This document shows positions 12,716 through 62,934 of a stretch of DNA of 64,000 nucleotides, in pieces; position 1 is the stretch's first letter; the number at the start of each line of letters is the position of its first letter. Location: the IMG/VR virus record IMGVR_UViG_3300018962_000001, positions 1 to 64,000 of that record. One strand, 5' to 3'. The notes beneath the pieces were generated by a model that ran no database searches, was not told where the DNA came from, and saw only the letters and a program-made list of their open reading frames with translations. The translations under genes were made by a program, and so were the position numbers.

Positions 12716-13327
12716 TCACGCATCGTGCGCAAGATACAACGCATCTTGAATCGTGACCCGCTGCCATCCGGCGGCGGCGGCGGCTTCCAAACAGCGCACC
12801 CGCAGCCGCGTATCGGGAACGGTTAAACACAGCGCCGCTTCGGGAATGACGCGCGCGATCAGGCGGCTCCGCTCATAATCATCCGGCGTGCGCACGGTTA
12901 CCTGAATACTCCCCCGCGATGGACCATGTGCCAGCATGGCACGGACGGCCTGCGCCTGATCGATCACGCTGCCGGTCGTCCGTGGCACTGTGACCACTAA
13001 ATAGTCAAGCAGCCGGTGCCACGATTCGGAAGGAACCGGCGGCGATTCGAGGACCACCTGATCCTCGCGCTCATGGACGGCCTGGATAAACAAACGGATC
13101 GCACTTGGCTGATCCGTTTGGTTGTCGAGGAGCCGGATCAGCGTGGGGCCAGGCGCACGCGACCGCACCGATCGGAGGATCTCGCCGGGCAGGCAGGCGC
13201 TCCCGATCGACTTCGCAAGCCGAACCGTCACACAGACTCGGCCCTGAAGCACGCCGTGCGGCACGAGCATCGGCCCGTTGATTCCAGATACCGCGAGCGG
13301 TATCCCTGGCGGGGCATTCATAATCAT
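12716..13327 (-). CDS. hypothetical protein, probably leaderless
   Basis: ATG lies 6 nt after a TATACT -10; no SD. Confidence 0.55.
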   Translation of the reverse strand: MIMNAPPGIPLAVSGINGPMLVPHGVLQGRVCVTVRLAKSIGSACLPGEILRSVRSRAPGPTLIRLLDNQTDQPSAIRLFIQAVHEREDQVVLESPPVPSESWHRLLDYLVVTVPRTTGSVIDQAQAVRAMLAHGPSRGSIQVTVRTPDDYERSRLIARVIPEAALCLTVPDTRLRVRCLEAAAAAGWQRVTIQDALYLAHDA

Positions 13328-13333
13328 AGCCAT

Positions 13334-13362
13334 AGTATAGCGCAAAGATTCGCGCATGTCAC
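13334..13362 (-). promoter_or_regulatory. sigma70-like promoter (divergent pair with 13390)
   Basis: GTGACA-17-TATACT. Confidence 0.65.
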
Positions 13363-13389
13363 CTGGCGCAACAACCTTGCTCCATCCCC

Positions 13390-13418
13390 TTGACGTGCGC
13401 GCATAGTTGCGCTATACT
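13390..13418 (+). promoter_or_regulatory. sigma70-like promoter
   Basis: TTGACG-17-TATACT. Confidence 0.8.
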
Positions 13419-13443
13419 GGCACGGCAAAGGAAGGATAGGGGC

Positions 13444-13722
13444 ATGGGTACGCACGACGGTGTTCACCGCGGCATGATCGTCTTCAAATGGCACGACACC
13501 CGCGCCTTCGGCATGACCCAAATGTACGCCGAGGTGATCCGGGTCAATCGAGTCACCGTGACCGTTGAATGGCTCCGATCTGGGATACGGCAGCGCCTGC
13601 CGTTTGGCGACCTGCATCCTACGCATCCCGACGAACGGGCCGATATTCTGGCCGCTGAGGATCGGCGCATGCAGGTGATTGATCGGAACCCCTATGCCTA
13701 TGTGGAGATCGAAGATGCCTGA
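13444..13722 (+). CDS. hypothetical protein
   Basis: RBS aagga after promoter. Confidence 0.65.
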   Translation: MGTHDGVHRGMIVFKWHDTRAFGMTQMYAEVIRVNRVTVTVEWLRSGIRQRLPFGDLHPTHPDERADILAAEDRRMQVIDRNPYAYVEIEDA

Positions 13723-14146
13723 ACCATTGAAGGTCCACTACAGCGATTGTGATTCCATTCGTGGCGTCGGGCGCTGTAATTGTGGCGTACTCTGCCACGG
13801 GCGGGACTGTGACTGCTGCCCGATCCCCGAATCAGTCCCGGAAGGGACCGAGCACCCGGTGGAGCGCCCGATCGGTGAAACGTTCCTGGTTACGTTGCAG
13901 CGCGAGTGGGTTGTGCTGGACGGGACAACGCCCCCTGGACGGCGCGGCCATGCAACCATTCCTGCCGGAACGCATCGGATGGAGCGCATTCGACAACCCG
14001 GTGGGAAGGCGTATTGGTTGGTGCTGGAAGGCACGCTGACCGGCATGAGCGAAGGGGCCTGGCGGCAATGGGGCATGGATGACACGTGGGACCGGACTGA
14101 TCCCGCCTTTGTGCAGATTGATCCGCTCTCCCCGGAGGACGCATGA
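13715..14146 (+). CDS. Cys-rich hypothetical protein
   Basis: overlap-coupled; HYSDC..CNC..C..CDCC. Confidence 0.6.
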   Translation: MPEPLKVHYSDCDSIRGVGRCNCGVLCHGRDCDCCPIPESVPEGTEHPVERPIGETFLVTLQREWVVLDGTTPPGRRGHATIPAGTHRMERIRQPGGKAYWLVLEGTLTGMSEGAWRQWGMDDTWDRTDPAFVQIDPLSPEDA

Positions 14147-14850
14147 CCACATTTGATGATCTGGTGGAACGGCTGCGCCTCGCGCTGAATGAGGCCGATC
14201 AGTCCTTTAGCTGGAATCAGGACCCACGCTACCGGTCTAGCACCGTTGGTGTGCTCACCGATCGCGGAGGGGCGAGCCTCTTGATCCGTGCCGAAGGAAC
14301 GGGCGACGATCCACAAGCGCTGGTGGTGATCGGACGCTATAGCGACGCAGAGCGCCAGTTCCTCCAGCCGGACGAATATGACTTGGCGGCGGTTTCGGTG
14401 AGCGACCGCGCCCGGTCGCGACCGCACGGGTTTGCTCAGGCCATTCTCAGGCATCTCCTGCCGGTGTATCAGCCGCTGCTCGCTACTGTCAAGCTCCGCA
14501 TGCAGAACCAGAGCCAGGCCGGGGCAGGGAATGAGACTCCCCTGCCTAAGCATAAGCACGAATCCCCGACGCAGCTTGTTGCGCGCACCAGCTATGCGTA
14601 CGGACGATCCAACGGCTGGAGTCATGAAGACTCCCTCCGCGTGACAATCCGCGAGATTCGAGACCAAACCGCCTTGTCGCTCGACGACGCCCACAGGGTC
14701 GCGCTCATGACAGCGATTGACTGGATCGACGATCAGGATCGCCAGCTCCACGCGCTGCGATCCTCCTGCGTGGAAGCACTGATCACCCTACGTCGAGCCA
14801 GCCTGTCCATCCCGGCGGAATCCCCAGAACAACAAGAAGGAGAATCCTGA
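14143..14850 (+). CDS. hypothetical protein
   Basis: RBS ggagg, ATGA overlap. Confidence 0.7.
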   Translation: MTTFDDLVERLRLALNEADQSFSWNQDPRYRSSTVGVLTDRGGASLLIRAEGTGDDPQALVVIGRYSDAERQFLQPDEYDLAAVSVSDRARSRPHGFAQAILRHLLPVYQPLLATVKLRMQNQSQAGAGNETPLPKHKHESPTQLVARTSYAYGRSNGWSHEDSLRVTIREIRDQTALSLDDAHRVALMTAIDWIDDQDRQLHALRSSCVEALITLRRASLSIPAESPEQQEGES

Positions 14851-15065
14851 TGACGGATCGAGTCCATGTATTGACGGTTGCGCTGAAAGAACCGATGCGT
14901 ACCGATGATGTTGAAGCCCTAGTGAATGCCATCCGGCTGTTGCACAACGTCGCCTCCGTGACGACGGAGATCGTCACCCCCGATGCCTACTGGGCCGCCG
15001 AACGGGCACGTCAAGACTTAGCGAGTCAAATCTGGGCCGTCCTGCATCCAACAATGCGGCCATGA
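14850..15065 (+). CDS. hypothetical protein
   Basis: RBS aaggag, TGATG overlap. Confidence 0.65.
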   Translation: MTDRVHVLTVALKEPMRTDDVEALVNAIRLLHNVASVTTEIVTPDAYWAAERARQDLASQIWAVLHPTMRP

Positions 15066-15221
15066 CGTTTCGGGTTCCTCGGTGGGTATCCTGGCTCCTG
15101 GTTATCTGGGCGGCGATCTACACCATCAGCGTGTGTCCGATGGCCGCCTTCTGGATCGCGCTGGCCTGGCTGAGCTTTTGGACGCTGATCCTCGACTTCC
15201 CCCCCAACCCGTCACCACCCC

Positions 15222-15250
15222 TTGACGTATGCGCCAAACTGCGCTATACT
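15222..15250 (+). promoter_or_regulatory. sigma70-like promoter
   Basis: TTGACG-17-TATACT. Confidence 0.8.
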
Positions 15251-15299
15251 CTGAGCATGACGAACCGGCGATCCCGCCGAGCGAGAAAGGATACGACAC

Positions 15300-15701
15300 A
15301 TGGCTCAGATGACCGTCCGGGGGCAGAGCTTTGAAGCGGTGAGCGCCCAATGGGCCGGGATGACCGCCCACGCGCAAGCACGCTACGAGCGGCAGGCCCG
15401 GTTTGATCGCGAGATCGTTCCCCTGTGGGACTCGCTCACAGACGGCGAGCGCCGCGCCCACGATCTGTTTGCCGCCCAACGACGACGCGCCGAGATCTAC
15501 GGCTGGCACGAGGAACGCCGATGGGACGATGCGATTCAGGCGGCGGATCGGGCCGATATGGACCGGGCCATGCACTATAAGCTATTTCAACGCGATCAGG
15601 TTCCGCATACCAATGTCTGTCCACTCCACGCGGAGCACTACGACGGCGAGGACTTCGGTCCCTGTCCCATGTGTCTGCGGGGCATGGGAAGGGAACAGTA
15701 A
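15300..15701 (+). CDS. hypothetical protein
   Basis: RBS gaaagga. Confidence 0.7.
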   Translation: MAQMTVRGQSFEAVSAQWAGMTAHAQARYERQARFDREIVPLWDSLTDGERRAHDLFAAQRRRAEIYGWHEERRWDDAIQAADRADMDRAMHYKLFQRDQVPHTNVCPLHAEHYDGEDFGPCPMCLRGMGREQ

Positions 15702-35400: not shown

Positions 35401-36148
35401 ACAGGAGCGCACGACCCGCAGCGGTCGGCGAGGGACCGAGGACGTTCCAAAACAGGACGCGCCCGGCCCCTCGTCGTTGGCGGCAGATCTGCCAGGCTTT
35501 GCGGTCGTAATTGGGGCAGGAATCAAAGGGCACCGCGATCTTCAATTCTTTCTCAAACGGCAACGCATACTCGATTACCGTGGCGCGACCGGGATCATCC
35601 ACATGCCGTCCGACCTGCACGGCATAAAAGCGGGCAGCGGGCATACCGGCTTGCAGTCCCCGCGTTAACACCCCCGATCCCGCCGCCGACCAGACCTCAT
35701 CAAACGGGCCATAGGTCTCCCAGACCTGCCGCGCCGCCCGTGCAATCGCGGCGTGCGCCCCCGCTCCGGCCCCGCCGAACTCCATATAGTGCGCGCCCTG
35801 CTCCTTGCAGTAGAGCTGGCATTTGGCCTGCACATGACTCAAGTAGCCATGTGGAACCTGGAAGATCCGCGCGCCGAGGGCTTTGGCTTCGAGCGTGCGC
35901 GGATGTGGCTCCTTGCGCTTTGCCACAAAGATCGTCGCGCGGCGGCCTGTGATCCGCGCACAGGCCGCCAGCGCCAGCTGTGCGCCGCCATACGCGGGCG
36001 AGGCATAGGCCACTTCCGCGTAGCGGGTAAACAACTGGATGAGATACCGCCCTTTGGTTCCCCCCGGCAGGCGATCGTCGCGAACCACGGCAATGCCCTG
36101 ATGATCCTCGACGATCGGCACGGTCTCATAGATCGCAGCAGTGGTCAT
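35366..36148 (-). CDS. PLP-dependent enzyme, fold type II (ACC deaminase/cysteine synthase-like)
   Basis: VRDDRLPGGTKGR (candidate Schiff-base Lys), AAGSGVLTRG phosphate loop; ATGA-coupled to the MTase. Confidence 0.8.
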   Translation of the reverse strand: MTTAAIYETVPIVEDHQGIAVVRDDRLPGGTKGRYLIQLFTRYAEVAYASPAYGGAQLALAACARITGRRATIFVAKRKEPHPRTLEAKALGARIFQVPHGYLSHVQAKCQLYCKEQGAHYMEFGGAGAGAHAAIARAARQVWETYGPFDEVWSAAGSGVLTRGLQAGMPAARFYAVQVGRHVDDPGRATVIEYALPFEKELKIAVPFDSCPNYDRKAWQICRQRRGAGRVLFWNVLGPSPTAAGRALLSSASASKSSVG

Positions 36149-38277
36149 AATTCCTCGCCATAGCGTCCTTCCGGCACCACCGGCGCGGCATGCCACGCTC
36201 CGGCGGACTGAATCGCGGACGGAATCGGATCAGCCACCGTGGGATCGGCAGCGGAGTCATCATAGGTGCCGGTCGGCACCTCGGCTCCGGTTTCCTCATC
36301 CACTTCGGTATCGTCCTCAATGTCGCCAAACTCGACCGGCCCGACCCACTCGGTCGCCTTGCGCCAATCGCCCTTGATGAAAATGAGGACGTTCTGATGA
36401 CTCTTACCCAACTTCCTCGCTTTTTCAAACTGACGCCCCACGCGCACGGCCAGCGATCCGATCGGCGTGACAAAGATGGCCTCATTATACAAGCGTGCCC
36501 CGGCATCTTCAAACGCCTGGATCGTGTGGCTCACAAAGTTGTGGTAGTGGCCGTCTTTATCGCGGACATCGCCAACCACAAAACACGCAAAGCGATCGGG
36601 CCGCAGCCGGGCGACCGCATGCGCGATAATTTCTCGGTAGATCGTGTGAAAATCCGCATAACTCATATTAGAAATATCACGGGGATCGTCCGAATAGACC
36701 TCCAGATCGGCATAGGGCGGACAACTGAAAATCAGATCAGCCTCAAAGTCCGGCCCCACCAGATCCGGCAACGTCCGCGAGTCGCCGCAATGCCAGATCG
36801 GCGTCGGGTCATCCGGGCGCAGGATCGATTCGATCTGGGATCGATTCGCGGCAACCTGCTCCGGGCGTAAATCAATGCCGGTATAGTGACGGCCCAGGTA
36901 GCCTGCGACGATTCCACGCACCGATCCCCCGGCAAAGGGATCAAGAATCTGCCCACCTTCCGCACAGAACCAGCGATACGCCAGCTCGGTCAGCACCGGG
37001 TCGAAGACGGACGTGCCGGTTTGCGACAAGCCCTCACCGGTCTGTTGGTTTATGTAATGGTCCCTTTGGAATTCCTCGGTCGTGAGCGGGCGGCCCAACT
37101 CCCGCTCTTTTTCGCGCTTTTGCTTATAGTAGCTCGGATCACGGCCCGAATCCGAGGTAAACAGCACGCCCGATGTATCGCGGGGAGCCTGTTTGCCGCT
37201 GGTCTTCATCCAGGCAGAATTCGGGCCGCCGCCGCCGCCGGGCGTGATCGCCTTTTCGCGTCGCCGGGCCTCACGATCGGTCCCCTCGCCTTCGGCCATG
37301 CGTGCCGAAAGTCCTCCGCCCCCGGCAGCGAGGCGATTGGACCCAGAAATGCCCTTGCCGTTGCCAATCGTATGTTCGCCCTTCATCAGATCTTGCCCGA
37401 AGGTGCGGCCATAGGACCGGGCCGCCCGTGCGCCTTGGGGCGAGTGCGCGTCCTCCCCGTCGCTGTCCGGCGGCGCATCAGCCTCTGCGCCGTCATGGTC
37501 CAATCGAGCCGCATACGCCTTCCGATCCCGGCGATACAGCTCCGATTCGCCACTGAGATTCTGGAGATTCGGGCCGCGCCCCAGCTCGCTCTGGATACCG
37601 AGTTTTAGCCAGGCTTTCTTGCGATCCGACCAATATCCTTGGCGGGCGTCGAGCACCGAGAAGGGCGGTACGCCAAACCGATCCGCCAGGGTTGCGCGCG
37701 CGGCTTCGGTGCTGGGCGTCGGAGCGGTCGCTGAGGAATCCGATCCAGAGTCATCCTGCGATTCCAGGTGCTCCAGCATATCGATCAAGGCCCGATCTTC
37801 GGCGGCCAGCTGGTCGTACAGCTCGGTATATTGTTCCTCGTCGCGAACCGCCAACGCGGCGATCGGGTCGAACGTCATCAAGGCCAGACGTTCTTCTTCC
37901 TGGCTGAGATGGACATAGATGACATCGATGAGCGGCAACCGGCGGCGCTGCGCGAGACTGACCCGGAGATGGCCGTCCACGATAAAGCCGGTTACCTCAT
38001 TGACGATGATCGGGGCGATAATCCCGATCCGGTTCATAATTTCCGTGAGGGCATCTTGTTGAATGCGAGTATGGATGCGCCAGTTTTCCGGGTGATTCAG
38101 CAGCGTATCCGGCGGTACCTTGACGAGCTTCACGATCTTGCTTTCCCACAGGGCGGCAAAATCGTCCGGGTCCGCCTGTTGGTGGGCCAGAATCTCGTCG
38201 ACGCGCTCCTCGCTGAGATCATGGATCTCAATCACGGGATGATCCGTGTCGTCCGATTCGGGGGCATGCGTGGTCAT
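36145..38277 (-). CDS. ParB/Srx N-terminal domain fused to SAM-dependent amino-methyltransferase-fold domain
   Basis: HPENWRIH..IVDGHLRV (ParB-like); ILDPFAGGSVRG (motif I); FSCPPYADLE (motif IV); RBS aaggag. Confidence 0.88.
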   Translation of the reverse strand: MTTHAPESDDTDHPVIEIHDLSEERVDEILAHQQADPDDFAALWESKIVKLVKVPPDTLLNHPENWRIHTRIQQDALTEIMNRIGIIAPIIVNEVTGFIVDGHLRVSLAQRRRLPLIDVIYVHLSQEEERLALMTFDPIAALAVRDEEQYTELYDQLAAEDRALIDMLEHLESQDDSGSDSSATAPTPSTEAARATLADRFGVPPFSVLDARQGYWSDRKKAWLKLGIQSELGRGPNLQNLSGESELYRRDRKAYAARLDHDGAEADAPPDSDGEDAHSPQGARAARSYGRTFGQDLMKGEHTIGNGKGISGSNRLAAGGGGLSARMAEGEGTDREARRREKAITPGGGGGPNSAWMKTSGKQAPRDTSGVLFTSDSGRDPSYYKQKREKERELGRPLTTEEFQRDHYINQQTGEGLSQTGTSVFDPVLTELAYRWFCAEGGQILDPFAGGSVRGIVAGYLGRHYTGIDLRPEQVAANRSQIESILRPDDPTPIWHCGDSRTLPDLVGPDFEADLIFSCPPYADLEVYSDDPRDISNMSYADFHTIYREIIAHAVARLRPDRFACFVVGDVRDKDGHYHNFVSHTIQAFEDAGARLYNEAIFVTPIGSLAVRVGRQFEKARKLGKSHQNVLIFIKGDWRKATEWVGPVEFGDIEDDTEVDEETGAEVPTGTYDDSAADPTVADPIPSAIQSAGAWHAAPVVPEGRYGEEL

Positions 38278-38287
38278 GGAACACTCC

Positions 38288-38674
38288 TTAGCGATCGAAG
38301 GCAGGCAAGACACCGGGCGTCGTTGGCGAGTCTGGAGGAAAGCGTCGCAGAAGATCGGCCAGCATCCCCTGAGTCGCGGCAAGCTGCGCTCCCAGCTCGG
38401 TCAGCTGGTCCTGCATCGCATCATCACCATCTCGACTTTGGGGAGAATCTTTGAACCGAAACCACCGCGCCAGAACGATAAACGCGCCGACCTGATGATA
38501 TTCGGACGCGAGGTTTTCAAAGGTCGTGGTGAGAAAATCAAGCCACCAGGGGGCAAGGTGCGGTGGGTAGCCCTCCTGCTGCCAATAGGTCAACATCGCA
38601 TGGGTGGCCCAGGTCAGGAGCCACCCACCGAGATACATCCAGCCTAACGAGTACTCATGCCAGAGGCGTTTCAT
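38288..38674 (-). CDS. small membrane protein (DUF6766-like)
   Basis: TTFENLASEYHQVGAFIVLARWFRFKDSPQSRD; two TM segments. Confidence 0.65.
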   Translation of the reverse strand: MKRLWHEYSLGWMYLGGWLLTWATHAMLTYWQQEGYPPHLAPWWLDFLTTTFENLASEYHQVGAFIVLARWFRFKDSPQSRDGDDAMQDQLTELGAQLAATQGMLADLLRRFPPDSPTTPGVLPAFDR

Positions 38675-46498: not shown

Positions 46499-47860
46499 AT
46501 GGAAAAAGCACTACCGCACAATGAAAGCGCGGAACGGGCCACGCTCGGCGCAATCCTCCTGGATCGCGATGCCATCATCCCCGTCGCTTCCTGGTTGGAC
46601 GAGTCACATTTTTATGTCGAAAAGCATGGGTGGGTGTACGCGGCGCAGGTAGCCTGCCTTAAGCGCCATGTGCCACCGGATCTCGTCAATGTTGCCGAGG
46701 AGTTACGCACGCGCGGGCAGTTAGATCAGATTGGTGGCGTTCCCTTCCTCGTCGATCTCTCCAATAGCGCACCGACCTCCGTTCATGTGGAGTATTATGC
46801 GCACGCGGTTTGGAAAACCGCGAGGAATCGTCGCGGGATCGCGGCTGGTGGGCAGATCGCCGCGCTCTATTACGAGGAAGATCGCGACTCCGAGGAGCTT
46901 GACCAGGAAGCGCGGCGGCTGCTCCACGCCGCCCAGTCGGAACAACTCGACACCGATCTTCAAACGATCGCACAGGTTGTTGCCGAGCGCGAAGCGCAGT
47001 TTAACAAGCCTGTGGAACCGGCGATCTCGACGGGGTTGATCGATCTGGACCGGCTGCTGAATGGTGGCTATCACAAGGACGATCAGATCATCATTGCCGC
47101 GCGGCCCGGTATCGGCAAAAGCTCGCTGATGGGGCATACCATGCGCCATAACCTGTTTTTGCCAGCGCCGCCGCGCATCCATACGTGCGAACTGGAAATG
47201 CGCAATCTGAACCTGCTCGACCGCATGCTCGCGTCCGATACCGGCCTGGATCTGTCCTTGTTTCGGCGCAATGACTTTACCGATGAGCAACTCGTCATGG
47301 TCATGGAGGCCATGTATCGGTACGAGGGCGTGCCGCTCTCACTCGATCAACGCATGAGCGTGGATATTGATGGCCTGTGGAAACGGATTGAGCTTCAGGC
47401 CAGTCGCGTTGGCAAGCCGGATCTCTTGTTCGTTGATTATCTCCAACTCGTCGGCGGCGGCTTTGTGAAAAAGGGTCGATCGGCAGCGAACCGCCAGGAA
47501 GAAGTGGCGTATGTGTCGGCACGACTCAAAGCGCTGGCACGCGAGTTAAATATCCCCGTGGTGGCGTTGGCGCAATTATCGCGGGAGATCGAGAAACGGG
47601 GCGGCCCGCCCATGCTCGCCGACTTACGCGAATCCGGCGCGATCGAGCAGAACGCCGATATAGTGATTCTGGCCTGGCGTCCCGATCTGGAAGAAGAAAC
47701 GCAGGAGGAGCGGACCGAACGGCAACGGTTAAAAATTCCGGTTCGCGTCGAACTGATTGTGGCAAAACATCGCAACGGACCAACCGGCGCGGTGAACGTG
47801 CTGGTGCAGGATTGGGATGGGGTCTGGTTAAACGCATCCGATCGGGTTGATCAGTACTAA
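46499..47860 (+). CDS. dnaB: DnaB-like replicative helicase
   Basis: LPHNESAERATLG, AARPGIGKS, VDYLQL, LAQLSR, LADLRESGAIEQNAD, AKHRNGPTG. Confidence 0.96.
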   Translation: MEKALPHNESAERATLGAILLDRDAIIPVASWLDESHFYVEKHGWVYAAQVACLKRHVPPDLVNVAEELRTRGQLDQIGGVPFLVDLSNSAPTSVHVEYYAHAVWKTARNRRGIAAGGQIAALYYEEDRDSEELDQEARRLLHAAQSEQLDTDLQTIAQVVAEREAQFNKPVEPAISTGLIDLDRLLNGGYHKDDQIIIAARPGIGKSSLMGHTMRHNLFLPAPPRIHTCELEMRNLNLLDRMLASDTGLDLSLFRRNDFTDEQLVMVMEAMYRYEGVPLSLDQRMSVDIDGLWKRIELQASRVGKPDLLFVDYLQLVGGGFVKKGRSAANRQEEVAYVSARLKALARELNIPVVALAQLSREIEKRGGPPMLADLRESGAIEQNADIVILAWRPDLEEETQEERTERQRLKIPVRVELIVAKHRNGPTGAVNVLVQDWDGVWLNASDRVDQY

Positions 47861-48435: not shown

Positions 48436-48459
48436 CCATTGAGCAGCGTGGAGGCTTTG

Positions 48460-50355
48460 ATGAAGTGTTTGGTTCTTCGTTCCCTGATGCTGGTCAGCGT
48501 GCTGGCCCTACTGATCAGCATCTCGTCCACCCACCCCCCAATCGCCCGCGCGGCATCCGCGAATTTACTCTGGAAGCCGTATTTACAACAACTGACCGAT
48601 ACCGGCGTGGTCGTCCGGTGGACGACCAAAACAGGAACGACCTCGGTGGTCCGCTATCGAACCGGGAGCGACGCGCTCGCCTCGGCATCGGGCACGCCAC
48701 GGACGATTGCCGCCTTGGGCGCGCAGATGCATCGCGTTGCGTTAACCGGCCTGCGTCCGAACACGACCTATACGTATGAGATCGTCACCGATGGAGAAAC
48801 GTTGTGGCCGGACGGCGTGATGTCCTTCCGCACCGCTCCCGCGCGCGGGAGCGGCACGCCGGTCACATTTGCCGCGTTTGGGGACATGGGCAAAGGCACG
48901 ACGAGTCAACGCCTCCTGCGGGATCAGATGGCTGCCGACTCGTTGTCGTTCGTGCTGTCCACGGGCGACAACGCCTATGATGCCGGAACGTATGCGGAGT
49001 TTGACACAAAGGTCTTCCAGATCTACGGCGACGTGTTCTCCAGGGCAGCGTTCTTTCCGACTCTGGGCAATCATGACTATGCAACCAGCAGTGGTGCCCC
49101 GTATCTCGATCTCGTCAGCCTGCCGTACCAGGCGCTGCGCGCGAGTGATCACGAACGGTATTACTCGTTTGACTATGGCAATGTGCATGTCGTCGCTCTC
49201 GATACGAATGCTCCCTTGAATGTGACCGATAGCGCCGCGACCGATGATATGTTTGACTGGCTGCGGGCGGATCTCGGGGCGACGCAGCAGCCCTGGATTA
49301 TTGCGGTCACGCATCATGCGCCGTACTCGACGGGATCGCATGGGTCGGACGCGCGCGTGCGATCCAAGTTGGTCCCGATCTTTGAGCAGTACGGCGTCGA
49401 TCTGGTGTTAAGCGGCCATGATCATATTTATCAACGGAGCAAGCCGCTGCGCGGCGGCGTGGTGACTCCGATTGCGCAGGGCGGCATTCCCTATATTGTC
49501 ACGGGCGCGGGTGACGCCGCATTGTATGCCTGCGGGACCGCCGAGTGGGTTGTCGTTTCGTATTGCGCGAAGCCGTATGGAATCTATAACCGTATCCGCG
49601 TGGCAGGCGATCAGCTGGTGATTGAGGCGATTGATAATACCGGCGTGCTACGGGATTCCTATACGATGGGAGAGGCAACGCCGCCGCCGGGCATTCCCGT
49701 GCCCGGTACGATCCAGGCCGAGGACTATCGTGTTGGTGGGCCACAGGTAGGCTACGCGGATAGTACCGCAGGGAATAGTGGCGGTGTGTATCGCACGGAT
49801 GACGTGGACATCCAGGCAACCAACGATCCGGCGGGTGGTGGCTACAATATCGGGTGGATGACCGCCGGGGAATGGCTGGCGTATGACATCGAGGTGACCA
49901 CGCCGGGAATGTATCAGCCGTCGCTTCGCATCGCGACACCGCATAGTGCCCGGCAGGTGAGTCTGGTCGTTGATGAAGTCAGCTCGCCCCCCGTGATCCT
50001 CCCCACGACGGGTGACTGGCAAACCTGGACCACCGTTCGCGCCGATCCGATCAGCCTTACGGCTGGGCGGCATACGCTCCGCATGGTGGTCGATACCCCC
50101 AGCCAGAACATAAACTGGATTCGCCTTGATCTGGTCCCGCCAACCCCGACTCCCGCGCCAACCCAGACCGCAACGGCGACGACCGTTGCCACGGAGACCG
50201 TGGAGCCAACGGCCACGGCGACGGTGACCGCTTCCCCGACGAGGACGCCCACTCCTACGGTCGCGCCAACTTCGACCCCTGTGGTCTTGCGGTTCCCACT
50301 GGTGACCGATCCCTACCCGCGTCCTGAGGAGCCACCCCCGTATCCCGCCCCGTAG
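48460..50355 (+). CDS. secreted purple acid phosphatase-family metallophosphoesterase with FN3-like N-domain and CBM6
   Basis: signal peptide; GDMG, GDNAY, GNHD, GHDH; QAEDY..IGWMTAGEWLAY; Pro/Thr-rich tail. Confidence 0.92.
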   Translation: MKCLVLRSLMLVSVLALLISISSTHPPIARAASANLLWKPYLQQLTDTGVVVRWTTKTGTTSVVRYRTGSDALASASGTPRTIAALGAQMHRVALTGLRPNTTYTYEIVTDGETLWPDGVMSFRTAPARGSGTPVTFAAFGDMGKGTTSQRLLRDQMAADSLSFVLSTGDNAYDAGTYAEFDTKVFQIYGDVFSRAAFFPTLGNHDYATSSGAPYLDLVSLPYQALRASDHERYYSFDYGNVHVVALDTNAPLNVTDSAATDDMFDWLRADLGATQQPWIIAVTHHAPYSTGSHGSDARVRSKLVPIFEQYGVDLVLSGHDHIYQRSKPLRGGVVTPIAQGGIPYIVTGAGDAALYACGTAEWVVVSYCAKPYGIYNRIRVAGDQLVIEAIDNTGVLRDSYTMGEATPPPGIPVPGTIQAEDYRVGGPQVGYADSTAGNSGGVYRTDDVDIQATNDPAGGGYNIGWMTAGEWLAYDIEVTTPGMYQPSLRIATPHSARQVSLVVDEVSSPPVILPTTGDWQTWTTVRADPISLTAGRHTLRMVVDTPSQNINWIRLDLVPPTPTPAPTQTATATTVATETVEPTATATVTASPTRTPTPTVAPTSTPVVLRFPLVTDPYPRPEEPPPYPAP

Positions 50356-55740: not shown

Positions 55741-56673
55741 ATGGGGAAAACTAAGATTGAATGGTGTACCTATCAGCGCCCAGATGGGTCGTGGGTGCCC
55801 GGTTATACGTGGAATCCCTGGTGGGGCTGTACCAAGGTGTCGCCCGGCTGTACGCATTGCTATGCCGACAGCCTCTCGACTCGGTGGGGCTACGACATCT
55901 GGGGGCCGAAGGCCGACCGCCGATTCTTTAAGCCCGACCATTGGAAGGAACCGCTGATCTGGCAAGCCGAGGCCGCCGCCGCCGGGGAGTATCGCTATGT
56001 CTTTTGTGCCTCGATGGCCGATCTGTTTGAGTTTCATCGCCTGGGTGCCGTGCGCCGTAAGCAAGATGAAGCGCGTCAGCGAACGTGGGATCTGATCGCC
56101 ACCACCCCGAATCTTATCTGGCTGCTCCTCACCAAGCGACCCGAACAGATTCGCTACATGGTCCCCAATACCTGGCTTCAACACTGGCCGATTCATGTAT
56201 ACACCGGCACCTCCCTGGAAACGCAGGAGGAGCAAGTGCGCGTCGATGATCTGCTGCGGGTGCCGGGCACCCACTTCTTGTCCTGTGAGCCGCTGCTCGG
56301 CCCGATCGATCTGCATGATCTGGTCATCCCGCAGGTGGTTGGCGATCATCATCTCTCCTGTCTGGAAGTGGATGTGGCTGTCGAGGATGATGGCGACTAT
56401 CACGGCAGTGTGGTGAACTGGGTGATTGCCGGTGGTGAGTCCGGAGGTGGCGCACGGGCAATGGACCCGGAGTGGGCACGCGATCTGCGCGATCAATGTG
56501 CGATCTCCACGCCTCCCCCTGGAACCGCCTTCTTTATGAAGCAGATGGGGTCGATCTGGGCACGCCAGCACGGACTCAAGGGAAAGGCCGATGATCTGCA
56601 TGAGTTGCCCGAAGACCTGCGTATCCGCCAGTTCCCGCCGCTCCCGGCGCTGCCGCAGGAGGTGGTGCGATGA
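55741..56673 (+). CDS. phage Gp37/Gp68 (DUF5131) family protein
   Basis: TKIEW..TWNPWWGCTKVSPGCTHCYA, VFCASMADLF, LLTKRP, FLSCEPLLGP, WVIAGGESG, FFMKQMG. Confidence 0.92.
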   Translation: MGKTKIEWCTYQRPDGSWVPGYTWNPWWGCTKVSPGCTHCYADSLSTRWGYDIWGPKADRRFFKPDHWKEPLIWQAEAAAAGEYRYVFCASMADLFEFHRLGAVRRKQDEARQRTWDLIATTPNLIWLLLTKRPEQIRYMVPNTWLQHWPIHVYTGTSLETQEEQVRVDDLLRVPGTHFLSCEPLLGPIDLHDLVIPQVVGDHHLSCLEVDVAVEDDGDYHGSVVNWVIAGGESGGGARAMDPEWARDLRDQCAISTPPPGTAFFMKQMGSIWARQHGLKGKADDLHELPEDLRIRQFPPLPALPQEVVR

Positions 56674-57547: not shown

Positions 57548-58207
57548 ATGCCTGAACAAGATCCTGAATTTTCGATTGCCGAGGACGGACGGCGGATCGC
57601 TGAGGAACTGATCCCACAGTTTCACGCCGATCTGGTCGATGTTCCCATTCTGTATATCTATACGTACAAGGAAAAGAAAAAGAGCGGCAAGCGAATATTG
57701 GGCACGCTCAAAAAAGCCAGCGGCCTGACGCGCTGGTTGTCGCGCGGCTATTGCAGCGCGGATTCGGAGGACATGCGCGAGGCCGAGTACATCATGACTC
57801 TCGACTGGGGCTTCTGGCATAACGAGGCCACCAATGCCCAACGATATGCCCTGGTCGATCACGAACTCTGTCACGCCGAGGTCACGTTTGATGATGAGAC
57901 CGATGAGCCAAACTACGGTCTGAAGGGGCATGACATCGAAGAGTTTGGGATCATCGTGGAGCGGCACGGACTCTATCTGCTCGATCTTCAGGTCTTCGCC
58001 GATAAGATTGAGCAATTGCGACTGCCTGGCATGGAGCGCCGGGTGCCCCGCGGCCCGGCGTCCAGTGGGCGGTGGCACGATGGGCCGGTCCAGCCAGATC
58101 GCACGACCGAGACTCCAGAGGTAGAGCTTCGCGGACGGTTGTTGGGGCAGGACATCAACTGGTCGGGCAGCGCGGAGGATCTCAGCCGCCTGGCCGACGA
58201 TCGCTAG
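57548..58207 (+). CDS. putative phage metallopeptidase
   Basis: ALVDHELCH (HExxH)..HDIEEFGIIVERHG. Confidence 0.85.
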   Translation: MPEQDPEFSIAEDGRRIAEELIPQFHADLVDVPILYIYTYKEKKKSGKRILGTLKKASGLTRWLSRGYCSADSEDMREAEYIMTLDWGFWHNEATNAQRYALVDHELCHAEVTFDDETDEPNYGLKGHDIEEFGIIVERHGLYLLDLQVFADKIEQLRLPGMERRVPRGPASSGRWHDGPVQPDRTTETPEVELRGRLLGQDINWSGSAEDLSRLADDR

Positions 58208-58254
58208 ACCGGATCGGCGCGGCGATCGTCAGAGTCATACAAAGGAGCCGGAGC

Positions 58255-58815
58255 ATGATTGCCGCGCTGTACACCGATGGGGGACTCATCCTGGGAAATC
58301 CCAGCCCCTTCGGTGGCACCTGGGCCTATTGCCAGGTGGATGAACACAATGAACGGATCGAATCGGGATCGGCCTGGGGCATGGTGTATCTCCATCAATT
58401 TCCAGGCTGGCCGATGACGAACAACGTAACGGAGATGGCTGCGGTGATTCGCGGCCTGGAATCCCTGCCGCTGCGGTGGCAGGGAACCATCTATTGTGAT
58501 TCCAAGATCACCATTGAGCGGGTCAGTGAAGGCGCGTCGATGGAGGGGATTCCCGACGCCATGATCCAGCGCCTGGCCTTGGCGTGTCGGCGGGTCTGCA
58601 TGCCCCGCATCCAGTGGATTCATGTTGCCGGTCATCCAACGCGCGCCGAACTCGCCGCCGGGGTGAGTGTGGAGGGTGTCCCGGTCAGTCGGCACAATGT
58701 CTGGTGCGATACGCAGTGCAAGGCCGTCGCGACCCGCTGGAAGGCCAAGCATCCTGAAGAAGTCGCGCGCTGGCAGGCGCAGCGACGGCGACGGCAGGAG
58801 GAGGTGGCCGCATGA
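58255..58815 (+). CDS. ribonuclease HI-like protein
   Basis: YTDGG, TNNVTEMAA, IYCDS, HVAGH, NVWCD. Confidence 0.85.
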   Translation: MIAALYTDGGLILGNPSPFGGTWAYCQVDEHNERIESGSAWGMVYLHQFPGWPMTNNVTEMAAVIRGLESLPLRWQGTIYCDSKITIERVSEGASMEGIPDAMIQRLALACRRVCMPRIQWIHVAGHPTRAELAAGVSVEGVPVSRHNVWCDTQCKAVATRWKAKHPEEVARWQAQRRRRQEEVAA

Positions 58816-59129
58816 TCTTCGAAGCCGTATGGGAGAGTGCCCAACGAGGTGAATTAATCCTTGTCGATGGCGGGATGGTCCGCTTTCACGTCCGGCGAGA
58901 CGGTCAGCTTACCATCCATGAGCTGATCGTGCTCACGCCACGGCAGGGCATTGGGACGCGCCTCCTGGACCGCTTGAAACAGGTGCCGGGCGTGGTCCGG
59001 ATCGCCGCGCGTTGCCCCGCCGATCTGGCGGCGAATTCCTGGTATCAGGCGCGGGGCTTTCAGTTTGGCGGGTCGGCCCTCACGCGATCAAACCGACGAA
59101 TCAACACATGGTATCTCCCCCTCGCTTAA
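58812..59129 (+). CDS. GNAT-family acetyltransferase
   Basis: RQGIGTRLL (acetyl-CoA loop), ANSWYQARGF. Confidence 0.75.
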   Translation: MIFEAVWESAQRGELILVDGGMVRFHVRRDGQLTIHELIVLTPRQGIGTRLLDRLKQVPGVVRIAARCPADLAANSWYQARGFQFGGSALTRSNRRINTWYLPLA

Positions 59130-59887
59130 TCTTCTGTGCGGGCGGCAACGCGGGCTTCTACGAGATCGCCGCCGCCGCCGGATTTGCCTACGGATCGCAG
59201 CTTCCTGAGACGGTCTATGGCCCGCTGCTGTTTGCCGACCAGGATTTCAAGCGTCCCAATCGCGCGGCCTATATGGCCGCGCTCGCGCACCATCGCCCCC
59301 AGATGGCAACCGTCCTGGATTTGGAGCAGGCAGCCCAATGCACGACTGTGTTGGACTGGGCCGCCGAGGCTGCGCACTATGTCGCCCAGGTGATTATCAT
59401 TCCGAAATATCCAGGCGCGATTCAGCGCCTCCCTCGATCGATCGGACCGGCAGAGGTGGTCCTTGGGTACAGTATCCCCACTCGCTATGGCGGTGCGCCG
59501 CCGGAGCTTGATCTGGCCGAGTTTGCTGGGTTTCCTGTCCATCTCCTGGGCGGGTCGCCGCATCACCAAATCGCGTTTTATTGTGCGTTTACGGGTCGCC
59601 CCGCCCCGCGGTGGATGGGACCGCGCCTGCGCCACTTTCTCGCTCGATATGCAACCTTTGGCCCCATCGCCGAGGTCCGCAGCGTTGACGGCAATATGAT
59701 GCAGCTCCAGGCAAACCGGCGTTGTGCCTTTTGGCGACAGGAAGTCGGGGCACGTGGGCATTGGGTGCAGCTGTCGGAGGTTGGAGCCGGTGGCTTTGGC
59801 CGGGACAGCCACCGTGAGGCCTTTCGGCGATCCTGTCGAAACATTATTCAGGCGTGGAGCGATCTCCATGCCAGGGAGGACGAATGA
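59108..59887 (+). CDS. TIM-barrel protein with TGT/DpdA-like motifs (DUF6610-like)
   Basis: FADQDF, ATVLD, IIIPK, GYSIPTRYGG, PVHLLGG, SVDGN. Confidence 0.55.
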   Translation: MVSPPRLIFCAGGNAGFYEIAAAAGFAYGSQLPETVYGPLLFADQDFKRPNRAAYMAALAHHRPQMATVLDLEQAAQCTTVLDWAAEAAHYVAQVIIIPKYPGAIQRLPRSIGPAEVVLGYSIPTRYGGAPPELDLAEFAGFPVHLLGGSPHHQIAFYCAFTGRPAPRWMGPRLRHFLARYATFGPIAEVRSVDGNMMQLQANRRCAFWRQEVGARGHWVQLSEVGAGGFGRDSHREAFRRSCRNIIQAWSDLHAREDE

Positions 59888-60726
59888 CTCATCCTGACAT
59901 CCCCCGGAGCATCCGGCGTTGGCTGGAAGAACGTGGCTGGTATGGGTCCGTGAGGAATCTGAATCGCAATCAGCTCGATCTGGTCAAAGGGTCGATCCTG
60001 CGGCATGGCCGACTCTCGCTCCATGCGCCCCACTCCCGTGCGCTTTATGTCGAATGGTATGGGCCGGACCCACGGATCGGTGGGCGCATACGCTGGAGTG
60101 AAAATCTCCACCTGTCGGTGCATGCAGGCCTCGTCCATCTGCACCTTTCTGTCCAGGGACTCCTGCGGGAACCACGTGACCCCCGGACACCACGACTCTG
60201 GCGGGGCGAGAAGCGCTACTACGGGGATCGTGAGTTGAGTGTCCAGCTCGCCTACGATCGTGATTGCATCACGCCCCTTGGCGTGTACTACACCCTCTGG
60301 ACCGCTGATGACGACCTGTGGGAGCAACGACCGCGCTGGCGGCACGGCGTGATCTGGCCCTTTGAGACTCTGTTTGGGGCAATGGATGTGCAGTGGCGTG
60401 ATGTGCGCCGAACAACGCTGGCAATCCCGCTGCCGGAGCGCACATACACGGCGACTGCGGTGTATCGCGAGGGGATCTGGACCTGGCGGCGGTTGCCCTT
60501 CTATCGCAAACGCCTGGTGCGAGTCGAGGTGACCCCCGATCTCCCGATCCCGTATCCAGGGAAAGGCGAAAATAGCTGGGATGGCGGCGAACGGGGCATG
60601 GAGGACTTTTCTGGACCCTACCAGACCGATCATGAGGCGGTGGGGGCAATCGTGCAAACGATCCTGCGCGATCGCATGCGCTACGGAGGAGCGGACTGGC
60701 AACCCGCAGAGTTTACCGAGTCGTAA
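59884..60726 (+). CDS. hypothetical protein
   Basis: RBS ggagg, ATGA overlap. Confidence 0.65.
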   Translation: MTHPDIPRSIRRWLEERGWYGSVRNLNRNQLDLVKGSILRHGRLSLHAPHSRALYVEWYGPDPRIGGRIRWSENLHLSVHAGLVHLHLSVQGLLREPRDPRTPRLWRGEKRYYGDRELSVQLAYDRDCITPLGVYYTLWTADDDLWEQRPRWRHGVIWPFETLFGAMDVQWRDVRRTTLAIPLPERTYTATAVYREGIWTWRRLPFYRKRLVRVEVTPDLPIPYPGKGENSWDGGERGMEDFSGPYQTDHEAVGAIVQTILRDRMRYGGADWQPAEFTES

Positions 60727-62262: not shown

Positions 62263-62934
62263 ATGGGCGTGACCGATCAGGCAACGCAGGAGCGCTGGCT
62301 CTATGGTGGTGATCCCGACGCCGTTCCGACGCAGGATGACATCACGCATGAGCATTTTCGCACGCCGCTGTGGGTGATTGATGCGGCCATCCGCTTAATC
62401 ACCTGGATTCCCTCCGATTGCCCGCTCCGCATCTTGGATGCTGGAGCGGGCAATGATGCCCGCTGGGGCGTGGGAGCCAAGACTCGCTGGCCGTCCTCGC
62501 AGCTCACGGCAGTCGAGGCCCGTGCGGTTCCGGCGGCGGCGGCGGTGGATCGGTGGGTCCATGCCAGCCTCTTTGATTCCTGGGACCCGGAACCGTACGA
62601 TCTGATCGTGACCAATCCGCCGTTTAGCCGGTCTCTCGATTGGGCACAGTGGTGTATCGCGCACTGTGCCCCCGGTGGAACGATCCTGCTGTATATGCGC
62701 AACGCATTCGGGCACGGCTGGCGACGCTATTCGCAACTGCATCGCCAGCAGCCGTTTGCAATCGAGGGGAAGCTGGTGCAACGCCCCGTGCATGAACATG
62801 GCTCGTCCGACCGCGCGCAGGAATATAGTTGCTACTACTGGCGTGATCCCTGGCCCAACGCCACCCCCGATCCAATCATTAAATGGCTCAGTCGCGTGGA
62901 TCTGCCCCCCGAACAACAACAATCCTTTCTATAG
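62263..62934 (+). CDS. DNA N6-adenine methyltransferase-like protein
   Basis: HFRTP, ILDAGAG (motif I), IVTNPPFS (motif IV). Confidence 0.8.
   Translation: MGVTDQATQERWLYGGDPDAVPTQDDITHEHFRTPLWVIDAAIRLITWIPSDCPLRILDAGAGNDARWGVGAKTRWPSSQLTAVEARAVPAAAAVDRWVHASLFDSWDPEPYDLIVTNPPFSRSLDWAQWCIAHCAPGGTILLYMRNAFGHGWRRYSQLHRQQPFAIEGKLVQRPVHEHGSSDRAQEYSCYYWRDPWPNATPDPIIKWLSRVDLPPEQQQSFL

Follow-up and report, generated by a model that had tools for sequence, protein, structure and literature searches.

A DUF6610/DpdA4-like barrel gene paired with a mini-GNAT gene in a soil-crust phage: a candidate module for 7-deazaguanine modification of DNA

Do two overlapping genes of a phage from soil crust, one for a GNAT protein of only 105 aa and the other for a 259-aa protein reminiscent of tRNA-guanine transglycosylases (TGTs), together form a DNA base-modification system? 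The pair lies in the window analysed here, i.e. the first 64 kb of the 204,685-bp virus record IMGVR_UViG_3300018962_000001, which stems from a biocrust metagenome (CheckV 100 % complete, GC content 60.8 %). An earlier note on this DNA had read the larger protein as a TGT/DpdA-like barrel that could swap or label a base with the help of a host-supplied precursor, and the GNAT as an enzyme that could acylate an amine on that base. Our analysis identifies the pair as a genuine DpdA4-like module, carried by a phage of bacterial type and comprising a previously undescribed GNAT partner, for which we infer an acyl chemistry.

By its sequence, the 259-aa protein belongs to the DUF6610/DpdA4 family. 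Its match to Pfam DUF6610 (PF20314) has an E-value of 9e-31 (107.5 bits vs a cut-off of 27; 7e-32 in the genome-wide profile search), and it has 775 homologues in one search and 754 cluster representatives, taken at 50 % identity, in an exhaustive library of 1.84 billion proteins. The 105-aa protein has 120 homologues of around 102 aa that share 50-62 % identity with it. Judged from such matches, both open reading frames (ORFs) are real, far beyond chance. A tblastn search of the barrel retrieved gene 1 of the Mycobacterium phages Rinkes, Knocker and Funsized (E 1e-11, around 40 % identity) and HVTV-1 gp69 (HVTV1_69; E 1e-6, 24 % identity over aa 20-209, i.e. 73 % of the query). The DUF6610 domain of HVTV1_69 spans aa 135-372, and its gene is located immediately downstream of that for GTP cyclohydrolase, in the same cluster as QueE, QueD, QueC and QueF. 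HVTV1_69 has been named DpdA4 and described as a distant TGT/DpdA homologue ‘specific to archaeal viruses’ (Cui/Hutinet et al., NAR 2023, PMC10516641); HHpred linked it at 100 % to DUF6610 and at 92.5 % to TGT (PF01702), it was proposed as the enzyme placing preQ1 at 30 % of the G positions in HVTV-1 DNA, and singleton dpdA4 genes were found to occur in some viruses (PMC10516641). In the literature searched, DUF6610 is discussed only in this work by Cui, Hutinet et al. (2023; bioRxiv preprint and PMC10516641). The NCBIfam and PADLOC searches returned no matches, and phmmer and profile searches of the barrel against PDB sequences gave nothing meaningful.

The AlphaFold2 model of the protein, built from a 45-sequence alignment (pLDDT 96.2, pTM 0.92), is a compact eight-stranded barrel. 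Foldseek against the PDB and Swiss-Prot retrieved generic TIM barrels, TGT among them, with E-values for TGT no better than those for aldolases or PdxJ. Exhaustive VIA-align comparison and a viral structure library discriminate better. In the former, the TGT superfamily gave the longest alignments (213-225 residues vs around 180 for other barrels), by a margin that is modest, as shown by PdxJ (13.7). In the latter, a ParB-DUF6610 fusion ranked first in Foldseek (6e-19), followed by the HCTV-1 DpdA4 homologue (1e-12) and then by phage DpdA and queuine tRNA-ribosyltransferase proteins. The window protein is a (beta/alpha)8 barrel closest to TGT structures.

Conservation was assessed in 94 diverse DUF6610 members, among them proteins of the halovirus and the ParB-fused types. 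Residues D44, D71, P99-K100, S122, H145, L147, G148, G149, Q154, D194 and N196 are invariant in at least 91 of them and, in the model, all lie at the C-terminal ends of strands. The three Asp residues are found in the motifs FADQD (D44, 92/94), VLDLE (D71, 92/94) and D194-G-N196 (D194, 93/94), and the three motifs that had been read from the letters, i.e. FADQDF (aa 42-47), PVHLLGG (aa 143-149) and SVDGN (aa 192-196), are all present. Bacterial DpdA likewise depends on three essential Asp residues, i.e. D95 as general acid/base, D130 for base recognition and D256 as nucleophile (PMC10164549).

Profile alignments connect the two sets of residues. An earlier hhalign comparison of the shallow alignment A1 with 18 phage DpdAs or four TGTs was not significant (P 0.02-0.3), and since the control with known homologues was equally weak, both profiles were enlarged. 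The 94-sequence profile aligned with 59 bacterial and archaeal TGTs at P 0.0029 over 130 columns, while the control in an identical set-up, i.e. the known homologues DpdA and TGT, gave a worse value of 0.023. The alignment pairs the Asp of VLD71 with that of the TGT motif LDEC, D194 with the nucleophile Asp of LFD, PVHLLGGSP with PVHLFGAGHP of the archaeosine TGT (arcTGT), IIPK with VQG, and YSVPT.yGG with Y.IGG; around D44, the order strand-D, helix, strand-LD agrees with that in DpdA. The TGT/DpdA-like barrel of the earlier note is therefore borne out by family, by fold and by the invariant Asp residues that fall on TGT active-site Asp residues; the catalytic Asp pair is present and invariant as D71 and D194, and structure prediction gave no non-TGT fold. 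Between the HLLGG and DGN strands, the window protein also carries an insertion of around 24 residues (aa ~160-186, with a helix at aa 172-180), which is absent from most homologues and common to a few (P0014, P0087).

The smaller protein is identified as a GNAT because of three observations taken together, i.e. a sub-threshold match to Pfam Acetyltransf_7 (E 2e-4, 22.1 bits, below the cut-off of 27, which several relatives and fused forms exceed), a fold match and a conserved motif A. Its AlphaFold2 model (pLDDT 94.3) shows a GNAT-fold core, and Foldseek places it with the GNATs RimI, Ard1 and NatC (TMq 0.7-0.83). The acetyl-CoA motif A reads RQGIG (aa 44-48), in which G46 is nearly invariant and G48 invariant, and QKQGIG in longer relatives; motif B is NSWYQARGF. 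Residues E14, H26, R28, Q32, T34, G48, N75, F83 and W100 are invariant in the GNAT alignment A3. The N-terminal arm is shortened to one short helix (aa 4-11) before the sheet, i.e. the full alpha1-alpha2 arm is missing; C-terminally fused versions of the GNAT have a longer arm. As modelled, the 105-aa protein is a GNAT-fold protein with predicted acyl-transfer activity.

Gene order ties the two proteins together. In 34 of the 49 eligible close relatives, a GNAT gene is located no more than 700 bp upstream of the barrel gene, and in 28 of the 49 the distance is at most 60 bp or the two genes overlap. Looking from the other side, three GNAT homologues chosen on long contigs regardless of the presence of a barrel all lay immediately upstream of DUF6610. 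Furthermore, the two are fused into single ORFs in both orders, with the GNAT either first (L064, L096, L087, L036, L045 and L047) or last (L037/L039, L040, L043 and L053). GNAT-barrel fusions account for at least 21 of the best 150 cluster representatives of the exhaustive search, and well-supported tree branches require at least two origins for them. Prediction of a barrel-GNAT complex scored 0.00 and gave no verdict, which is evidence neither way. That the GNAT acts with the barrel, as had been suggested, is thus supported by conserved synteny and by fusion in both orders, and the two overlapping genes can be regarded, on sequence grounds, as one functional module. No link of a GNAT to DpdA was found in the literature searched.

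The overlap of the two ORFs by 22 nt, which had been noted before, is confirmed by their coordinates (Table 1), and an identical 22-nt overlap is found in locus L008. While the longest form of the barrel ORF would have 291 aa from a TTG (59012..59887, plus strand), the 259-aa form is taken to start at the internal ATG because the homologue alignments begin there. A strong Shine-Dalgarno sequence precedes the GNAT gene, none is visible before the second ATG, and therefore the translation of the barrel is likely coupled to that of the GNAT.

The strongest functional evidence is the association of the family with 7-deazaguanine genes together with its DNA-directed fusion partners. For this comparison, 79 viral loci were retrieved, along with 14 from assemblies of prokaryotes. 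In a tree, the non-archaeal members fall into clade 1 (30 members), most of which have an N-terminal extension of around 140-215 aa that is ParB_N-like where detectable, and clade 2 (55 members), i.e. stand-alone barrels including the window protein, in which que genes are rarer. Among 37 lower-scoring relatives, which include clade 1, 19 are found beside a Vut_1/YhhQ-type transporter or beside QueF-QueC-QueD-QueE-FolE; YhhQ is the preQ0/preQ1 importer of Escherichia coli. Loci of the GNAT clade, too, contain genes of this kind: GNAT, DUF6610 and Vut_1 share one cluster in L022, L026, L090 and L164, and a GNAT-DUF6610 pair occurs together with QueC, QueD, QueE and FolE, encoded on the opposite strand, in L049. 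The phage of L006 harbours, beside its GNAT-DUF6610 pair, genes for QueF and Vut_1 as well as another DUF6610 domain, which is joined to an N6_N4 DNA methylase. The DNA-directed fusions are ParB_N-DUF6610 and DUF6610-N6_N4_Mtase. L049 also contains a second, very divergent DUF6610-like ORF (L049:15290-16051, minus strand; E 0.004), which adjoins a DNA polymerase A fused to a uracil-DNA-glycosylase domain (12891-15515, minus strand).

The family is also more widespread than previously described. DUF6610 relatives occur in assemblies of Chloroflexota, Thermodesulfobacteriota, Ignavibacteria, Peribacteria and Actinomycetota, and the DUF6610 clusters of the Atlas are viral, bacterial and archaeal. 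Because of the relatives in bacterial metagenome-assembled genomes, the members in mycobacteriophages and the peptidoglycan amidase (Amidase_2) that is present in the window along with DnaB, the family is not confined to archaeal viruses, and the published archaeal-virus-only distribution of DpdA4 does not hold. Megablast of the region against phages gave no match, and the best tblastn matches of DnaB, searched as a guide to the host, reached only around 33 % identity and were spread over many host genera.

Gene 1 of Rinkes (L002:1-1302; also in Knocker and Funsized) is labelled only ‘ParB-like nuclease domain protein’, a mis-annotation given that it holds a DUF6610 barrel at aa 199-384 (E 2e-33), in which every invariant residue is present. 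The gene is directly followed by one for GTP cyclohydrolase, with a separate dpdA and queC, queD, queE and folE also downstream. Because the DUF6610 gene 1 and a separate dpdA occur together, Rinkes-type phages have two TGT-like barrels. We also considered whether DUF6610 is a DpdB-like accessory, since the ParB fusion of Rinkes stands beside a separate DpdA. This was rejected in view of the ParB-fused members, which keep all invariant barrel residues, and also of the C-terminal domain of DpdB, which is alpha-helical (PMC10164549).

The phage studied here carries no precursor pathway of its own. Across the whole 204,685-bp genome, the profiles of QueC, TGT, GTP_cyclohydroI, PTPS, QueF and Vut_1 had no match at E<=1, and phmmer with seed sequences found none either, so that the absence of folE, queD, queE and queC reported for the window holds for the entire record. 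With neither que genes nor a transporter in the genome, the precursor must therefore come from the host. The proposal of a host-supplied precursor is in this respect strengthened, i.e. by the lack of que genes and by the YhhQ-type transporters commonly found in relatives, while the supply itself is an assumption.

Putting these findings together, the barrel would be a DpdA4-type DNA-guanine transglycosylase that acts after replication. D194 would be the nucleophile that attacks C1' and displaces guanine, D44 would serve as general acid/base, and D71 and the HLLGG strand would hold the base, so that a 7-deazaguanine takes the place of guanine. The incoming base, preQ0 or preQ1, would be drawn from the host queuosine pathway. 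The co-translated GNAT would work on the pathway of the barrel and acylate the aminomethyl amine of preQ1 with acyl-CoA, before or after insertion, and the product would be an N-acyl analogue of formyl- and methyl-dPreQ1. The resulting phage DNA would resist host restriction. What we infer is that DNA serves as substrate in this phage, which base is inserted and what accepts the acyl group. The parts of this explanation differ in strength. That the barrel is a 7-deazaguanine DNA transglycosylase is a prediction that is probably correct, and there is similarly good reason to expect the GNAT to act in the barrel's pathway. Acylation of the deazaguanine side chain is a tentative suggestion that we regard as rather doubtful. 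For the explanation as a whole, the chances appear to be about even. It is tempting to speculate, with even less confidence than for the acylation step, that GNAT-DpdA4 modules, separate or fused, are widespread in bacterial viruses and write a novel N-acyl 7-deazaguanine, e.g. 7-(acetylamino)methyl-7-deazaguanine, from host-salvaged preQ1.

Several points weigh against this explanation. The authors of the 2023 study failed to get DpdA4 working in E. coli (PMC10516641). The barrel has no match to Pfam TGT (PF01702) at E<=1 or to the PADLOC DpdA model at E<=10. The zinc site CxCxxC, present in all 59 TGTs, is absent from all 94 DUF6610 members; its absence is not disqualifying because it is also missing from all 18 mycobacteriophage-type DpdAs. 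The barrel is thus a remote TGT/DpdA relative that fails two formal marks of a TGT, i.e. the Pfam model and the zinc site. No profile alignment recovered D44 on the general acid/base Asp, and its placement follows from colinearity only. A que or Vut_1 gene was found within 10 kb on either side in only six of the 51 close-clade loci, and with neither que genes nor a transporter in the genome, precursor supply has to be assumed. In L049, the pathway is preQ0-only, and QueF is absent from the 20.6 kb retrieved; since preQ0 lacks an amine that could be acylated, this argues mildly against the aminomethyl target. Finally, DUF6610 can stand beside a separate DpdA, as in Rinkes, or beside a second DUF6610, as in L006, L049 and L055, and such paired barrels may have different jobs.

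The same preQ0-only pathway in L049, without an acylatable amine, lends weight to the alternative that survives best, according to which the barrel is the sole DNA modifier and the mini-GNAT acetylates a protein and not a base, i.e. either the barrel as a means of regulation or a host defence protein. Among solved GNATs, the closest matches are protein N-acetyltransferases (RimI, Ard1, NatC and HP0935), and AcrVA5, a phage mini-GNAT that acts on a defence protein, matches at 24 % identity. For an anti-defence acetyltransferase, however, fusion to the barrel in both orders would serve no purpose, nor would an association with it that persists over 31-60 % identity, while self-acetylation or regulation of the barrel is compatible with all results. 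We consider protein acetylation unlikely overall.

A second possibility is that the module acts on tRNA, remodelling position 34 of GUN-anticodon tRNAs of the phage or the host as a canonical TGT does. The phage carries around 38 tRNA genes in one array (genome 99684-128987, outside the window), which holds all four GUN anticodons of the queuosine family (Tyr-GTA, Asn-GTT, His-GTG and Asp-GTC), and without que genes it would use the host preQ1 pool; moreover, TGTs ancestrally act on tRNA, and in structure the barrel is matched best by a tRNA enzyme. This reading sits poorly with DUF6610 fusions to ParB_N and to a DNA N6/N4 methylase, with a barrel that lacks the zinc subdomain, the PUA domain and the C-terminal tRNA-binding domain, and with HVTV-1, in which DUF6610 is the only TGT-like gene and the DNA contains preQ1 (PMC10516641). 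We therefore regard it as improbable.

To the same low degree, the barrel could be a TIM-barrel enzyme with other chemistry, which exchanges or excises another base or acts on a sugar phosphate, with the GNAT working on its product. The Foldseek E-values that do not separate TGT from aldolases and PdxJ, the missing Pfam TGT match and the lack of a que gene in the present genome and in most close-clade loci could all be explained in this way. Under this reading, one would expect neither the links to YhhQ-type transporters and que operons seen across the family nor the TGT-like order and spacing of motifs, and the HVTV-1 prototype and the present clade have identical invariant residues. Conjugation of a deazaguanine-type base to a protein by a Cap10-like barrel, as in type IV CBASS, with the GNAT as an accessory, is very improbable, as the genome has no Cap9/QueC-like or CD-NTase partner and no PADLOC match, and the known DUF6610 fusions are DNA-directed.

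Around the DpdA4-like pair, other genes of the window (Table 1) show no comparable conservation. The TGA stop of the RNase H gene overlaps the ATG of the GNAT gene as ATGA (58812-58815); the RNase H gene shares an operon with the GNAT but is no conserved partner, as no RNase H homologue was found in related loci. The 290-aa ORF downstream of the barrel gene was not found in any related locus, and a DUF5131 homologue lies directly downstream of DUF6610 in L038 only. RNase H, the 290-aa ORF, the metallopeptidase and the methyltransferase were considered as parts of the module and rejected, since they are not conserved in related loci. Of the nucleic-acid-processing block that the earlier note had seen here, the individual members, i.e. 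RNase H, DUF5131 and a methyltransferase, were confirmed, while the block as such is not conserved in related loci. The note had counted the pair as a second modification system, and the 745-aa N6_N4_Mtase protein may be its first.

Table 1. Position of the GNAT-barrel gene pair, of neighbouring features in the window and of a second DUF6610 fusion in a related locus
Feature	Location	Position	Strand	Remarks
N6_N4_Mtase-domain DNA methyltransferase candidate	Window	36145-38382	-	745 aa
DUF5131 (phage Gp37/Gp68 family) protein	Window	55741-56673	+	E 3e-57
PhageMetallopep	Window	57548-58207		
RNase H gene	Window	58072..58815	+	Pfam RNase_H E 6e-7, phrog_531
Shine-Dalgarno AGGAGGAGG, strong	Window	58796..58804	+	7 nt upstream of GNAT ATG; read from sequence
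Mini-GNAT	Window	58812..59129	+	105 aa, ATG start; ORF list
GNAT 3' end/barrel 5' end overlap	Window	59108..59129	+	22 nt; from sequence
DUF6610/DpdA4-like minimal TGT-fold barrel (predicted)	Window	59108..59887	+	259 aa, internal ATG at 59108
290-aa ORF	Window	59854-60726	+	Overlaps barrel gene 3' end by 34 nt; phrog_20814, function unknown
NPPF-motif DNA methyltransferase candidate	Window	62263-62934	+	223 aa, phrog_799
Second DUF6610-N6_N4 DNA methylase fusion	L006	11469-12681		Immediately after QueF and Vut_1 transporter

Elsewhere in the window, a 638-aa protein (48439-50355, plus strand) combines a purple-acid-phosphatase-like N-domain, a calcineurin-like phosphoesterase and a CBM6/CBM35 carbohydrate-binding module. 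It sits between DnaB (46499-47860) and unannotated ORFs, an unusual position for such a protein within a replication block.

7-Deazaguanine modification of DNA is a major counter-defence of phages against restriction, for which DpdA-family genes are used as a signature. Our data show that the least-studied subfamily, DpdA4/DUF6610, reaches beyond archaeal viruses, and that the largest DUF6610 clade among the sampled loci is tied to a mini-GNAT, usually without a precursor pathway. Three features are new in comparison with PMC10516641, i.e. the occurrence of the family in bacterial viruses, its minimal form as a stand-alone barrel that comes without a biosynthetic operon, and the dedicated GNAT partner with its recurrent fusions. 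Probably, the module introduces a modified base, perhaps an acylated one, into the DNA of the phage. If this is true, a two-gene cassette of around 1.1 kb would suffice to hypermodify DNA from host metabolites, and the GNAT would define a new acylated deazaguanine, i.e. a new member of the hypermodified guanines; no acetyl or acyl derivative of dPreQ1 was found in the literature searched. Such a cassette would bear on how phage genomes are annotated and on the prediction of their restriction and nanopore-basecalling behaviour, and would be of use as a compact tool for labelling DNA.

Each component has a counterpart among known systems. The mini-GNAT resembles AcrVA5, a phage mini-GNAT of 92 aa (PDB 6IUF), in size and in its truncated GNAT core (24 % identity, TM by target 0.66), and AcrVA5 shows that a GNAT of such size can be catalytically active. 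AcrVA5, however, acetylates Cas12a and has no TGT-like partner, whereas the GNAT family described here is syntenic with and fused to DUF6610. The role proposed for it is that of DpdN and DpdM, the dPreQ1 formyltransferase and dPreQ1 methyltransferase of phages (PMC10516641), accessory enzymes with genes next to one for a DpdA, which modify preQ1 in phage DNA at its aminomethyl group. Their folds and cofactors are unrelated to those of the GNAT.

The best structural neighbours of the barrel are archaeosine and bacterial TGTs (PF01702; 1IQ8, 3UNT), with which its strand-end motifs are colinear, e.g. VDGN with the nucleophile Asp of LFD. Unlike these enzymes, it has no Pfam TGT match, zinc subdomain, N-terminal lid or C-terminal tRNA-binding domains, and is around 100 residues shorter. 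DpdA of Salmonella Montevideo (PDB 7UI4; PMC10164549) is a TIM-barrel DNA-guanine transglycosylase with three invariant Asp residues, which needs the ParB-fold partner DpdB; this partner finds its parallel in the ParB_N-like domain fused to many DUF6610 proteins. DpdA4 itself, i.e. HVTV1_69, shares with the window barrel the Pfam family and the invariant D, D, K, HLLGG, Q and D.N residues. While HVTV1_69 is a protein of 386 aa with around 134 extra N-terminal residues, encoded by an archaeal virus with a full preQ1 operon, the window barrel is a stand-alone protein of 259 aa from an amidase-bearing phage that has no que genes and a dedicated GNAT partner.

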